Assembly: GCF_964188315.1 (NCBI RefSeq)
Contig: NC_135667.1
Coordinates: 5,704,001-5,768,000 of the forward strand
Direction of reading: 5' to 3'
From: Podarcis muralis
Taxonomy: Eukaryota
DNA length: 64,000 nt
A model generated the notes under the pieces. The model saw nothing but the letters and a program-made list of their open reading frames with translations. It searched no databases and was not told the DNA's origin. The translations under genes were made by a program, and so were the position numbers. Position 1 is the stretch's first letter. The number at the start of each line of letters is the position of its first letter. Shown one piece after another: positions 12,246 to 19,818 of the stretch.

Positions 12246-13968
12246 CTCCTCTGAGAAGGTAATTTACTAAACCCAGTTCCCAAACCCTGTAGAAGGTAAA
12301 TTAGGAAGATCAAATAAATCAACAACGTACGCAGGCAAAACTCTGTGGATTATAATGGGCATTCTTCTTATACTGCCCATTAAATAAGAGATTTATTTAT
12401 GATAGTACTACTTAGAAATCTCTCTGGAATAACAGATCCTGTCAGGATTATTGATTTGCTAGCAGATACTGATAAAACACATGATCTGTAAAACAGCTTT
12501 CTTTGCTGGGGAAAAAGAGAGCAAGCTATCTTGCCAAGTCCATCACTCTGAATAGACTCTAGAGGCATTGTGTTAAGATCTTTTAAAAACAAGAAAACCC
12601 CAAAACTCATTTGTACGTATTATGAATCTCGGATTTGTTTGTGAAATCCTAACTGGGTGTCCCCCCCTTTTTTGCTATGATCTTTGTTTTTGTGGTGTGT
12701 TTTTTAAGCAAACAAAACTGACTGAGAAGGAAATCTTACACAGATTTACTTGGGAGTAAGTCCCAATTCTGACTGAGTAGGATTCACTACTGAGTATAGT
12801 TTACATGTATGAGTGGTGGCTTTTCCACACACGCCAGATAGGCAACATAGGGATTTATGTGTGTGTGCTTCCTGTGACAACAAACACAAATGCATCCATT
12901 CCTGTGGCACCTTCAACAACTGATAGATTCATCGTGGCACCTGCCGCAGAGTCTTCTTTATCGGTTGCGTGAAGCTAATCTGTTCTTTCAGTTACTTGGT
13001 AAGTTACTGCAGTCCTGGGCTGCCGCAGCTGCTCTGAACTTGCACACTTCTGAACTTGGCACAGAAGTATCACACACAGGCACTACTTGCACTGCATGGC
13101 CCGATTACAATATTTGCGTGAACAGATCTGCTAAGAATTAAGTCGCAGCACAAATCGGTTAAGTTTTCAAGTTGCTAGAAGACTCTGCTTTGTATAGCCA
13201 ATAGAGAGTTGCATTACCGGTAAACACACAAGCAGAGCTTAACTACAACCAACTCCCAATGGATTGCATTTAGGGTACTCTACCCCTCGCCTATTCCCCA
13301 AAAGAGACCCCCGTGTTGAACTTTCGGCGACATCTAGATTTATTTGCTGAAATTAATTTGAAGACAGAAATGATAAGCTCCATAGGCTGACATCTCCCGA
13401 TCTCTTTGCCTAGGAGAGTCAAATGCGGATGACTTTCAGAAAGGTGTTGAATAAAGCCCCATTTTTTAAAAACCCAAGTGCAATTTTTTTTTTACTCATC
13501 CGTCCAAACCGACCCTCTTCGAATAATCCCAATCCCTTCCCATCACTCTGTCGCTCATTTTCTGGGGCCGGCGTTGCAATCATGCCTTATAGCAATTTAA
13601 CCCGAAGCTCGTTGTCAGATGTGTTACTTGACTCGATGAAAGAAGCGGCTGCCGCGAAGTTCCCGGCCGAAAAGCCTTCCTTTCTTCACCGCCCGGGTGC
13701 AGACCCCCCAGGCTATCTTATGCCGGACCTCCCGCGCCCGCTTCTTAAAAGCAGCATTTGCTATTTTCGTCGAAAAGCAAAAGTTTGCAAATTTTCAGGC
13801 CGGGAGAGCGAGCCGAGGCTGAGTTCCCCGCTCTTTTCCGGAGGAACCCTGCCACCCCGGAGCGTGAAAACCAGGTCCACGAAAGCCCGCATCCTCCCCT
13901 TCGATCCAGCCTGGAACGGGAGGGATCCGCGGACGGGACTCGGAGTAATCGACTCTTTTGTGCGGGTT

Positions 13969-14068
13969 AAGAAACACAAAAGTTGCCCGGACCAGGAGCC
14001 CAGGTCTGGCTGTCAAAGCGCCGTGCTCGGAACGCACCAATCAGCGCGCAGCTCCTCCCCTATAAATA
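13969..14068 (+). promoter_or_regulatory. Histone H1 promoter (H1/AC box, CCAAT, TATA)
   Basis: AAGAAACACA at 13969-13978, GCACCAATCAGCGCG near 14034-14048 and TATAAATA at 14061-14068, in the canonical H1 order. Confidence 0.85.
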
Positions 14069-14154
14069 CGAGGCAGCGCCGCCGCCGCGTCCATTCAGCT
14101 TCTGCTTTGGTGACTCGACGGTGTGCTCAGGGGGCGGTATAGTTTCGGATCAGG

Positions 14155-14820
14155 ATGACTGAAGAGGTTCCCGCCGCGCCCGTCGCCGCGCTGCCGGCTG
14201 TCAAGGCTCCGGCCAAGAAGGCCAAGAAGGCGGCGGCCGCCGCCCCGAAGTCCCGCAAGGCTTCGGGCCCCAGCGTGACGGAGCTGCTGACCCAGGCGGT
14301 GACCGCGTCCAAGGAGCGCGGCGGCATCTCCCTGGCCGCGCTGAAGAAGTCGCTGGCGGCCGCCGGCTACGACGTGGAGCGGAACAACAGCCGTATCAAG
14401 CTGGGCCTGAAGAGCCTGGTGACCCGGGGGATCCTGCTGCAGACCAAGGGCACGGGCGCCTCGGGGTCCTTCAAGCTCAATAAGAAGCAGGCGGACAACA
14501 AGGACAAGGCGCCCAAGAAGAAGCCGGCGGCGGCGGCCGCGAAAAGCAAAAAGCCCGCGGCCAAGAAGCCCGCCAGCGCCGCCAAGAAGGTGAAGAAGGC
14601 AGCCGCCACCAAGAAGGGCGTCAAGAAGCCGGCCAAGAAGCCCGCGGCAGGCGCCAGGAAGGCCGCCAAGAGCCCCAAGAAGCCCAAGGCGGCGGCGGCC
14701 AAAAGCAAGAAGGCCGCCAAGAGCCCCGCCAAGGCGAAGGCAGCCAAGCCCAAAGCGAAGCCCAAGACCCCCAAGGCGAAAGTCGCCAAGCCCAAGAAGG
14801 CGGCGCCGAAAAAGAAGTAG
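14155..14820 (+). CDS. Replication-dependent linker histone H1 (221 aa)
   Basis: Globular domain GPSVTELL...[13 protein letters not shown]...[13 protein letters not shown]...[13 protein letters not shown] and a Lys/Ala/Pro tail. Intronless, with H1 promoter and 3' stem-loop. Confidence 0.97.
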
Positions 14821-14874
14821 GAAGGACCCGCTCGGCTTCCGCGAGAGGCAGCAGCGCTCCTCGTTAACCCCAAA

Positions 14875-14890
14875 GGCTCTTTTAAGAGCC
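14875..14890 (+). terminator. Histone 3' stem-loop (H1)
   Basis: GGCTCTTTTAAGAGCC followed by ACCCA and a purine-rich downstream element (AAAGAAAG). Confidence 0.95.
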
Positions 14891-15505
14891 ACCCACAAAT
14901 TCAAAGAAAGTGCTGAATTTCCTTTGCCATGTGAGGTGTTTCGGTCATGTGATGCGAGTGCCGCAGTTGTAGAATCTTAGTTGGTCCTATCCCTTGCACA
15001 GCCCCCCCTCCAATTCGAAACCACACCGCACCCGGCTGAGCAAATGTGTGGTAGTAGTAACGTTATTGCTGCATTTCTAGGCTTTCCTTTTCGGGTATCC
15101 CGTTGCTCATTTCCCCCCGCCGGCTTTTTTATCCGTGCTAAGTCACTTGACATTAATGTTTCTGCAACTTTGTTTTACGGGGGGGAGGGGAAGACACGTG
15201 GCAATGTGGGTGGGGAGAAAGCAAGTGGTTGCTGCCATGATGCTTTTAGGCGGAAGGGGGAGGGTAAAAATGGATTTGCTTTCCCTTAGAATGCGACCCC
15301 AGGGCCTCCTAAAAAGGGGGCAAAGTCGCTGAAGGAGGGTACAAGTCGAAGGGGCAAGATGCATGTGAGACGCCTGTAAATTGCACAGAAGTACCACGCC
15401 GCCGTGTCCTTTAACATTCCCAGCAACTGGTGCTTAATGCACAATACCGAACTAGCAATTGAACATAAGATTGCAGTAATTAACAGCTTTTTAAGGTTAT
15501 GTGGT

Positions 15506-15521
15506 GGCTCTTAAAAGAGCC
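15506..15521 (-). terminator. Histone 3' stem-loop (H3)
   Basis: Reverse complement reads GGCTCTTTTAAGAGCC followed by ACCAC. Confidence 0.95.
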
Positions 15522-15567
15522 TTTGGGTTTTTGAACGTAGGAGGCCCCTACTTTGACAACGAGTATC

Positions 15568-16002
<435 letters not shown>

Positions 16003-16244
16003 TCAGCAAATGAGACAAAGAGCCCGGTTGCTGGTTATTTATAGACCGCTCTCGCAGTCTTGATTGGCTGAAGACTGAGCATTGTCAGTTGGAAAGTTTG
16101 AATTTCCTGGGCTGAACAGCAATTGGCTAGACAAGATCACGCAAGAGGGCTAAGTGGGGCGGGGCCACAGCCTGGGTTTTTCCCCCCCGCCAGGAATCTC
16201 ATTGAGCAGCTGCAAAAGAAGTGCATTTGATTGGACGAAATTGA

Positions 16245-16691
<447 letters not shown>

Positions 16692-16724
16692 TTCTAAATA
16701 TCAAGGCTACATCTTCAAGCCAAA

Positions 16725-16740
16725 GGCCCTTTTAAGGGCC
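16725..16740 (+). terminator. Histone 3' stem-loop (H4 copy 1)
   Basis: GGCCCTTTTAAGGGCC followed by GCCCA, then GAAAAGAG. Confidence 0.95.
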
Positions 16741-17292
16741 GCCCACCTTTTCATGAAAAGAGATTACTTTCGCTTTTTTTTAATGGGTATACTTAATTCA
16801 AAACTTTGTAGACAGTGGTTTTTGTTACCAGTAATCTGGGCCGCACTTGCAGAATATTTACTATTTGTATAACAATAAATATTTTGGTAGGAAGTCTATA
16901 TACTCCGTGGTGTACTATACTACGCTGAAATGTTTAAAGGTTCGTTTCTCCGATCTTCCCGCTACATTCCCATTTTCTAGCCATACTACTAACACCTTTT
17001 GAGAACCACTGCCTTACAATAGCGCCTGTATTTAAACATAGGCACGTACATGTGTTATTTGGGCGAGGGGTGGAGACGCCAACCTTGAGATCCTTAGTAG
17101 AATGAATTATGGGAACAGGAAGAAAGGCATACAGAGCGCATGGGCTTAGCCAGAATTTTGTTTGGGGGACGTGCAGGCTTTAAAGATGGCAGCAGCGAGT
17201 GCAGTGCTCATAAATTCACAATATAGCGTTCTCAGAAATCCAGTTTGAAACTTTCCGCAATATAAACTCAGCTCTCTTATGACAGGGTGGAC

Positions 17293-17308
17293 GGCTCTGA
17301 AAAGAGCC
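17293..17308 (-). terminator. Histone 3' stem-loop (H2A variant)
   Basis: Reverse complement reads GGCTCTTTTCAGAGCC, with downstream AAGAGAG. Confidence 0.93.
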
Positions 17309-17350
17309 TTTGTGAAGTCCAGACGCCTCGGTCTGATTTTTACTGGGCCT

Positions 17351-17695
17351 TCACTTCGTGATCTTGGGCAGGACGCCGCCCTGGGGGACGGTGCCTTTGG
17401 CCAGCAGCTTGCTCAGCTCCTGGTCGTTGCGGATGGCCAGCTGCAGGTGCCGAGGGATGATGCGCGCCTTCATGTTGTCCCGCGCCGCGTTGCCGGCCAG
17501 CTCCAGGATCTCGGCGGTCAGGTACTCCAGCACCGCCGCCGTGTAGACAGGGGCTCCGGCTCCCACGCGCTTCGCGTAGTGCCCTTTGCGAAGCAGGCGG
17601 TGCACTCGACCCACAGGGAACTGCAAGCCCGCCCTGGACGAGCGAGACTTCGCCTTGCCCTTGGCTTTGCCGCCCTGCTTTCCACGGTCAGACAT
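17351..17695 (-). CDS. Divergent short histone H2A (114 aa, no C-terminal tail)
   Basis: The ATG at 17695 gives MSDRGKQGG...[12 protein letters not shown]...GGVLPKITK*. It has an H2A core with 17 substitutions and ends at residue 113. Promoter and stem-loop are retained. Confidence 0.85.
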
Positions 17696-17765
17696 CGTAC
17701 AGCTAAATCCACCAGGAACTACAACAACGAAGAGCAGAATGAGAAACACAATTTTGCAAGCCGCC

Positions 17766-17964
17766 TATTTATTTACTCCTGATGGATTCTTTCTGTCAAA
17801 TCTGATTGGGTGAAAGAGAGATAGGACGTGCTTAGCACCCAATGAGAATGTGTCTTCTTGCAACCAACCAGAAAGTTACATTTAAATTACGTATATGCTT
17901 GCGCGAGCCAATAGAAATGTCACATGGGGCGAGTTTATATTTGCATGTTCTGCTTTAAAAAAAA
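17766..17964. promoter_or_regulatory. H2A/H2B-type bidirectional promoter (TATA, CCAAT boxes, octamer ATTTGCAT at 17939-17946)
   Basis: Minus-strand TATA-like element at 17766-17775, ATTGG at 17805, CCAAT at 17839 and 17908, the octamer, then a degenerate TATA (CTTTAAAA). Confidence 0.7.
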
Positions 17965-18019
17965 GGGGGTGTTACGTCATTGCTCTTTCGTCTGAGAAAT
18001 AAACGATGGTGACCATATT

Positions 18020-18039
18020 GTTGTTGTTGTTTAGTCGTT
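18020..18039 (-). mobile_element. 20-nt extreme 3' end of a Bov-B/RTE LINE with 8-bp target-site duplication
   Basis: Reverse complement AACGACTAAACAACAACAAC equals the tail of the Bov-B copies at 21646-21665 and near 57000. Flanked by ACCATATT at 18012-18019 and 18040-18047. Confidence 0.75.
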
Positions 18040-18873
18040 ACCATATTAGATCGTGTTAAAAAACGAAAAGGAATACCTTTGATTGGTGTTTTTTCTTAAC
18101 GTGACAAACTATGACCAGTACTTACATTCAGAGCACAATATAAAATTAAAGTCAAACAAGCAAACTACATTCTCTTTTGTCTCTGCACGCGTGTAAATAA
18201 GGTATTGCGAAAGGCATGTGTTCCTGTACTTCTGCCACGGAAGCGAAAGCTGGTAGCGTAAAAGGAGACCAGAACGTCCTTCATCGAGGCAGCACCAAAT
18301 GCCATATTGTTATTTTTTTTTTAATGTATAGATTCAGGCTGATCGTTATCCTCATTTAATTGCAATGAAAGACGCCAGATGGATCAGATAACTATTGGGA
18401 TCCCTTACAACTCTACAATTTTATAATTCTAATGCGACATAAACCTCTGAATTTTACAGTATGCTTTTCTAATTCCTGCTCTTCACAAATTTGCAAATGT
18501 TACGATAAGAGTTTTCAGGTTCTGTTTTACTCTTTTCCCCGCCTGTACGCTACTATTTTGTTTTTCCATTCTGTTCTGCACCATTTCCAGATTACAGTAC
18601 TGTACAGTACTTAGTATCACCGGACAGAATCATAATTTTGTAAATTATGAAACGTGTCTATAACTCTCCCGGCTGCACTATCCTCCCCAAATCAAAGGCA
18701 CATATCCGTTTGAGGAGAAAGATCTGTTTTGATTGGAGAGTTTAAAATGCCCAGAAGCTGATTGGTGGAAAGTATAGCCTATAGCGTTATGGAGTTTGGA
18801 AAGAGGGCGTGGCTCAGTCAAAGGCTAGCATTTGCCCTTTCAGTCTTCCCTCTGGTCGGACTTTGCTTTATAA

Positions 18874-19251
<378 letters not shown>

Positions 19252-19287
19252 TCAGAATATCAAGATTATATTACAAACGAGCTCAAA

Positions 19288-19303
19288 GGCCCTTTTAAGG
19301 GCC
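19288..19303 (+). terminator. Histone 3' stem-loop (H4 copy 2)
   Basis: GGCCCTTTTAAGGGCC followed by GCCCA, then GAAAAGAG. Confidence 0.95.
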
Positions 19304-19818
19304 GCCCACCTTTTCATGAAAAGAGCTGACGCAGTTTGGGTTGCTAAAAGGTTTTTTTTGCTTAGGTAACCTTGGTTATCTGAAATATATGAGCCACTTT
19401 GGAAAGCGCAATATCGCATCTAAACGGGTGGGATTGTACCAGACGTGCTCAGTAATGAAGTGAGGCGATTTAAATAAATGCTGGGAAGTCGTGTAAAAAG
19501 CACATTTTGGTATACGCAGTGGAAGCAACGAAGGATAATTGATTAATAGCAGCAGCAATACTGATAGGTACACTGGAAATGTAGAAAAATGGTGTTCTGG
19601 GAGAGAGCACTAACCTAAAAACGGGCTAGGAGGGCAGCAAAAATACCGAGACTACAAGACTGACTGCGTTGCCTTCATATTGATATTAACTTTGAGTCTC
19701 TTTCCCCAAACTTTAGAAGCCAATATGCGTGTCTAAAAGATACACAGTGTTGCTAGGGATGAAGGATGGGGAAACAGGTGACTTCTACACTTTCCGACCT
19801 ACGTAGCTGCTGGCTCCA

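Follow-up and report, generated by a model that had tools for sequence, protein, structure and literature searches.

The 64-kb stretch of DNA analysed here (the window) carries, within a small histone gene cluster, an H2A gene of the replication-dependent type whose reading frame ends before the C-terminal tail. Judged from its sequence, this tail-less H2A is probably (at about 60%) a lacertid-specific gene that has been retained as protein-coding while selection on it was greatly relaxed, though not abolished. Its putative product is probably a working histone rather than plain junk, with expression predicted. Retention is supported by an open reading frame (ORF) that is intact in five species, lesions confined to the tail, lack of indels, conservative replacements and conserved cis-elements.

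The gene, its product and its flanks

The cluster, the gene and its expression signals are located as follows (window coordinates).

14155..19251: host mini-cluster, consisting of H1 (14155-14820, plus), H3 (15568-15978, minus), H4 (16380-16691, plus), the short H2A (minus) and H4 (18940-19251, plus)
17351..17695, minus: tail-less H2A coding sequence (CDS), 114 codons plus TGA (ORF list, Pfam, database protein matches)
17308-17293, minus: histone 3' stem-loop GGCTCTTTTCAGAGCC, perfect, with 6-bp stem and 4-nt loop (Rfam RF00032)
17278-17267, minus: purine-rich downstream element AAGAGAGCTGAG, 14 nt past the stem, candidate U7 snRNA pairing site
16720-16765 and 19283-19328: stem-loops GGCCCTTTTAAGGGCC of the two H4 genes, with GCCCAC after the stem (Rfam)
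17775-17766, minus: TATA-like box TAAATAAATA, about 70 nt upstream of the ATG, invariant in four species
17809-17805, minus: proximal CCAAT box (sequence and four-species alignment)
17843-17839 and 17912-17908: inverted CCAAT boxes (sequence and four-species alignment)
17939..17946, plus: orphan H2B-type octamer ATTTGCAT, relic of a divergent H2A-H2B promoter

The tail-less H2A gene is intronless, with one continuous ORF inside the histone cluster, running from the ATG at 17695-17693 to the TGA at 17353-17351 and encoding 114 amino acids including Met, with the C-terminus GGVLPKITK. Pfam identified both the histone fold (PF00125, E 4.7e-14) and the docking motif (PF16211, H2A_C, E 1.7e-05), and the best matches among solved structures are all canonical H2A, aligned without gaps over residues 1-112 only (E about 1e-58), with 86% identity to canonical H2A over these residues. 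The short H2A ORF reported in the preliminary description of this DNA (113 residues after Met, same C-terminus) is thus confirmed. The last canonical residue is 111, followed by T-K; residues 112-129 are gone, a truncation of the kind that characterises short H2As, and the alignment agrees with the earlier statement that K118, K119 and T120 are missing from an H2A of replication-dependent type. N-terminal lysines are kept, as is the docking domain up to residue 111.

Alignment with canonical H2A gave 15 replacements (G2D, R11K, A12G, N38H, E41K, L51T, K74M, T76A, E91Q, N94S, G98A, V100G, I102V, A103P and N110K) and two new residues (TK), matching all 17 of the substitutions listed in the preliminary description. 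Five of the six acidic-patch residues (E56, E61, E64, D90 and E92) are retained, with only E91 changed (to Q); the P. raffonei protein has a further acidic-patch change, E56Q.

One database protein is 100% identical to the product of the window gene, which has 97-98% identity to three Podarcis orthologues. The window protein represents a 90% protein cluster with three further members, all of 114 aa, from Podarcis lilfordi, P. raffonei and P. muralis; each departs from it at two or three residues. The automatic name that these proteins carry in public databases ('histone H2A-beta, sperm-like') is misleading. Lacerta agilis encodes a 118-aa tail-less H2A (ending ...NIQAVLLP), the only other protein scoring above canonical H2A among the matches listed. 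L. agilis, P. lilfordi and P. raffonei all have the gene order H4, H2A, H4, H3, H1, which identifies their H2A genes as orthologues of the window gene. The search for orthologues proposed in the preliminary description has thus yielded a 114-aa form common to four Podarcis species and a syntenic L. agilis orthologue that is also tail-less. Protein searches with a Podarcis or Lacerta query placed only each other's clusters above the canonical score, with the Podarcis cluster unlisted for the Lacerta query, so that absence from Zootoca or other lacertids cannot be concluded from searches of this power. By tblastn, no second H2A was found in the 64-kb window, and no canonical lacertid H2A CDS, suitable as a nucleotide outgroup, was found in the window plus six fetched loci.

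On the 3' side, the stem-loop of the tail-less H2A gene scored 29.1 bits against RF00032 (E 2.9e-05), below the 34-bit gathering score, as do those of both neighbouring H4 genes (33.7 and 31.0 bits). All 16 of its bases are identical in four species, and the base directly after the stem is G (consensus A). The downstream element has one variable base across the same species and presumably pairs with U7, a role that we assign from established knowledge of histone 3' processing. The gene thus has the 3' architecture of replication-dependent histone genes, in which a purine-rich element comes after the stem-loop and a polyA signal is lacking, and the predicted mRNA would be made and 3'-processed like other histone mRNAs via the stem-loop/U7 route. 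Exactly 42 nt (17350-17309) separate the stop codon from the stem. On the 5' side, only the distal CCAAT box is mutated, and only in P. raffonei. Sequence and Rfam concur with the preliminary description that TATA box, CCAAT boxes, perfect stem-loop and downstream element are intact in the window.

Further upstream lies an orphan H2B promoter half (17939-17990, plus), in which the octamer ATTTGCAT is accompanied by a TATA-like run rich in T/A and, at about 17972-17979, by a TGACGTAA motif. In P. lilfordi the octamer is mutated and flanked by an 8-bp deletion. No H2B coding sequence was detected by tblastn, using a Lacerta H2B query, in the window or in the orthologous Lacerta and Podarcis loci. 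An orphaned, decaying H2B promoter half is one of several observations that would fit a slowly decaying relic, i.e. a pseudogene or dispensable 'zombie' gene that, once cut off from the main cluster and deprived of H2B, ceased to matter to selection, gathered a nonsense codon, a frameshift and a deletion and is now drifting, in which intact ORF and signals would reflect limited time and chance, and which could still be transcribed. We regard such a relic as a serious possibility, although at clearly less than even odds. The database records of the tail-less H2A proteins all derive from genome annotation only, and no transcript or peptide of the gene was found, which likewise speaks for a relic.

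Two other histone clusters were also recorded. L. agilis has a lone H2B (fetched locus L004:3299-3679) located between H4 and H3 without an H2A partner, on the chromosome that carries the short H2A and about 90 kb away from it; it mirrors the H2A without H2B, and its exact protein was found only at its own locus. In the amphisbaenian Rhineura floridana the cluster is arranged H1> <H3 H4> ... H3> <H1, with neither H2A nor H2B.

Loss of the C-terminal tail

A four-species DNA alignment (the window with P. lilfordi, P. raffonei and L. agilis) revealed separate lesions in the two genera, with the following traces in the window.

17360..17361, minus: junction of a Podarcis-specific 35-bp deletion that removed old codons about 112-123, giving the new frame I-T-K-stop (TGA)
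17340..17360, minus: old-tail remnant in its original frame (H, K/E, V, K, A, Q, TAA; old stop at 17342-17340), now the last two codons, the stop and 3' UTR

In Lacerta, AAG is changed to TAG at K118 and 1 nt is inserted, and the former tail is still legible in the DNA alignment (P-TAG-K-T-(+1 nt)-E-S-H-K-V-K-A-Q-TAA). The 35-bp gap is common to the window, P. lilfordi and P. raffonei and absent in L. agilis, and starts midway through codon 112, running up to the H-K-V-K-A-Q-TAA remnant. This deletion is responsible for the short distance between stop and stem; the preliminary description had given the 42 nt exactly, and the cause can now be added. The PKKTE-like trace (CCC AGT AAA...) that it saw in the UTR is an out-of-frame reading, the true remnant being H-(K/E)-V-K-A-Q-stop at 17360-17340.

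An assembly error had been raised beforehand as a possible explanation. An artefact of assembly or annotation in the window genome is now of negligible probability and can be excluded, since P. lilfordi and P. raffonei, assembled independently, carry this very deletion and ORF, and the annotation of P. muralis contains the same 114-aa protein.

The three disabling events (TAG, +1 nt and 35-bp deletion) all lie at the end of the old 390-bp CDS, within its final ~54 bp. Conservation of the stop position, named earlier as a check, does not hold: with a nonsense mutation, a +1 insertion and a 35-bp deletion, the proteins end at 118 aa in one genus and at 114 aa in the other. Three lesions of pseudogene type and stops that differ between two genera are what a relic would be expected to show. 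Against a relic, every lesion is confined to the tail end, codons 1-111 contain no stop and no indel in five species from two genera, with lesions only from codon 112 on and none disabling the fold-coding region, and the 114-aa form was kept throughout the radiation of Podarcis.

By the time of the Lacerta-Podarcis split, three of the final seven tail codons were already altered, which suggests that the tail was by then untranslated. If so, we infer, short of proof, that the K118 TAG is ancestral and that the Podarcis deletion came later. Seven replacements (R11K, A12G, N38H, L51T, T76A, E91Q and G98A) are common to both genera and hence predate the split, and sites 41, 100 and 103 were changed differently in Lacerta and Podarcis. 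On the reading that we prefer, a retained gene under relaxed selection, the history would have begun with an H2A in a peripheral H1-H3-H4-H2A-H4 mini-cluster that lost its divergent H2B partner. About ten replacements may then have been gained (the seven common ones and those at sites 41, 100 and 103), followed by loss of the C-terminal tail, for which the K118 nonsense codon surviving in Lacerta would be the trace, and finally, in the Podarcis ancestor, by the 35-bp deletion of codons 112-123 that would have created the ending K-I-T-K.

Selection on the reading frame and its signals

About 7 kb of the cluster was aligned for the same four species. For the short H2A, dN is 0.05-0.06 and dS 0.03-0.06, and pairwise omega is 0.9-1.75 when Lacerta is compared with Podarcis and 0.27-0.54 among Podarcis species. 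For the neighbouring H1, H3 and H4 genes, omega between the same genera is 0-0.07 (dN about 0, dS 0.13-0.29), so that the tail-less H2A protein has evolved at least 10 times faster than the products of its neighbours, and a relaxation of constraint by more than 10-fold relative to canonical histones fits best. Codon-model likelihood gave omega of about 0.9, with omega = 1 not rejected (2*delta lnL 0.14) and omega <= 0.3 rejected. Codons 1-111 have undergone 16 nonsynonymous and seven synonymous events, which is the neutral proportion (expectation about 69:31). The 16 replacements that followed the split hit near-invariant sites of canonical H2A (e.g. G46E in Lacerta, E56Q in P. raffonei, K74M and V100G/A) and show no preference for tolerant sites (P 0.28), per-site variability being taken from 179 distinct canonical H2As (a 50%-representative search gave near-canonical H2As only). 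The omega within Podarcis favours retention; the other results for the short H2A, the between-genus omega included, are in line with the drifting relic described above. The dN/dS comparison proposed in the preliminary description is, on its own, indistinguishable from neutrality; signs of residual selection on the ORF and its signals come from other tests.

Compared with single-base changes made at random, however, these 16 replacements are of a more conservative kind (mean BLOSUM62 +0.56 vs -0.45, P about 0.006), a bias that speaks against a relic. Variable columns make up 6.9% of the tail-less H2A CDS vs 10-15% of clean intergenic DNA (Fisher P 4e-4), the CDS having diverged at about half the intergenic rate, which likewise disfavours unconstrained decay, and its nonsynonymous count differs from that expected at clean intergenic rates with P 0.004-0.04. 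There are no indels in 333 coding bp, compared with 102-132 gap events in about 5 kb of surrounding intergenic DNA. The number expected in the CDS is 6.6 (P0 0.0013), or 4.0 when only windows with GC >= 0.55 are used (P0 0.02); under the strictest matching, for GC and homopolymers, it is only 2.2 (P0 0.12), a figure that a relic could accommodate.

The cis-elements (stem-loop, its 5' flank, downstream element, TATA box and three CCAAT boxes) are variable at 3/58 positions, compared with 54/297 in the rest of the same flanks, i.e. they are 3.5-fold better conserved (one-sided Fisher P 0.007), which counts against a relic; beyond them, promoter and UTR sequence changes as fast as the background, a point against retention. 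The conservation tests were picked after the data had been seen and local rate heterogeneity is large, so that the Poisson and Fisher P values are optimistic and each test amounts to moderate evidence only.

Other features of the alignment were also recorded. In H3 and both H4 genes (15568-15978, 16380-16691 and 18940-19251), Lacerta-Podarcis synonymous divergence is 0.15-0.29, well above that of intergenic DNA (about 0.08-0.10) and of H1 (0.13-0.15), and could stem from gene conversion among paralogues or from CpG hypermutation. A noncoding block at 18100-18200, with no Rfam match or obvious ORF, has 4/101 variable columns in four species, against a background of 10-15%. The 500 bp upstream of H1 (13718-14217) show two- to threefold stronger conservation than intergenic DNA elsewhere (divergence of 1-2% within Podarcis and about 4% to Lacerta). 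A 28-bp insertion at 18020-18047, which resembles a duplication of local sequence around ATATGGT, is peculiar to the window genome, being absent in P. lilfordi, P. raffonei and L. agilis.

Relation to known H2As and significance

The lizard gene has the fold, intronless structure, histone-cluster location, CCAAT and TATA boxes, 3' stem-loop and downstream element of canonical replication-dependent H2A genes (H2A type 2-C, chicken H2A-IV), from which it differs by lacking residues 112-129 (with K118/K119, T120 and the basic tail) and an H2B partner gene. TH2A (H2A type 1-A) is a divergent, cluster-edge stem-loop H2A of mammalian germ cells, full length and with a divergent TH2B partner; both are divergent H2As of stem-loop-type genes, but the lizard gene is truncated and partnerless. 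Like histone pseudogenes of vertebrate clusters, it has lost its partner gene, shows omega near 1 and bears lesions of the nonsense, frameshift and deletion types. It differs from them in that its lesions are in the tail only, and the fold-coding ORF and cis-elements are conserved beyond the flanks in five species.

If produced, the tail-less H2A would pair with ordinary H2B and enter nucleosomes, which would then be devoid of the PRC1 site K118/K119, of T120 and of the part of the tail that runs past the DNA ends and touches H1. E91Q would slightly weaken the acidic patch, and K74M and T76A would touch the L2 DNA-binding loop. The L1 loop is the only H2A-H2A contact in the nucleosome, and N38H and E41K would alter both L1-loop residues. 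The closest biochemical model is human H2A 1-114, engineered or proteolytically clipped at almost the same point, which is able to form nucleosomes and chromatin both in vitro and in cells (Vogler et al. 2010; PMC3000355). H2A 1-114 nucleosomes are salt-labile and thermally mobile, are remodelled poorly by ISWI/SNF2H and bind H1 weakly (PMC3000355). By analogy, nucleosomes built with the tail-less H2A may be less stable, more mobile, poor substrates for ISWI/SNF2H and weak in H1 binding. The lizard truncation differs in being genetically encoded, in having T-K at 112-113 and in being combined with replacements in the L1 loop, L2 loop, acidic patch and docking domain; it is known from sequence alone.

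Among natural variants, H2A.B, H2A.L, H2A.P and H2A.Q form a monophyletic, X-linked, eutherian-only clade (PMC5880237), and short tail-less H2A variants are currently regarded as a eutherian invention (PMC5880237, PMC7226823). Like them, the lizard H2A is fast-evolving and lineage-restricted (PMC5880237, PMC7226823). Loss of the C-terminal tail together with fast protein evolution (PMC7226823) could be taken to indicate that it is a true orthologue or family member of mammalian short H2A.B/L/P/Q, an idea to which we attach almost no probability. The lizard protein is 86% identical to canonical H2A, its best matches everywhere are canonical and five of six acidic-patch residues are kept, so the loss or neutralisation of the acidic patch typical of short H2As is not seen. 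The gene has a stem-loop and lies in a histone cluster, unlike the X-linked short H2As, and its truncating mutations are still visible and specific to Lacerta and Podarcis. Lineage-specific visible lesions and near-canonical sequence rule out membership in the mammalian short H2A family, and the gene does not descend from the eutherian X-linked short-H2A/H2A.R clade; its origin is independent. The likeness to mammalian short H2As noted in the preliminary description is upheld for tail loss and is otherwise limited, with one of six acidic-patch residues lost. Its suggestion of an independently evolved squamate short H2A stands as regards independence from mammals, but 'squamate' is too broad for a gene identified in Podarcis and Lacerta only.

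A stronger version of retention would hold that lacertids independently evolved and selectively maintain a tail-less H2A convergent with mammalian short H2As and mimicking clipped H2A 1-114, with no PRC1-dependent ubiquitin at H2AK118/119, no T120 phosphate and poor H1 binding, its fast evolution reflecting diversifying selection, possibly in the germline. We consider this version unlikely.

A literature search found no paper on a tail-less or short H2A in reptiles. In Lacerta femoral-gland proteomics, only a 129-aa H2A is listed. A green-lizard transcriptome study includes an entry named only 'Histone H2A' among expressed, fast-evolving genes with high omega (Kolora et al. 2021; PMC8382678), and this entry could be the orthologue of the tail-less H2A.

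Should the gene be a relic, it would illustrate clearly for how long a histone pseudogene may retain its open frame along with perfect processing signals, and would be a warning for automated annotation. If instead it is a retained H2A under relaxed selection, as we favour, short tail-less H2As would have a second, independent and very young origin, in which the truncating mutations are still readable and the rest of the protein is near-canonical. Lacertids would then offer a natural experiment on removal of the H2A tail alone in vivo, with respect to PRC1 ubiquitylation, H1 binding and wrapping of the DNA ends, and a view of how histone variants are born from cluster copies.
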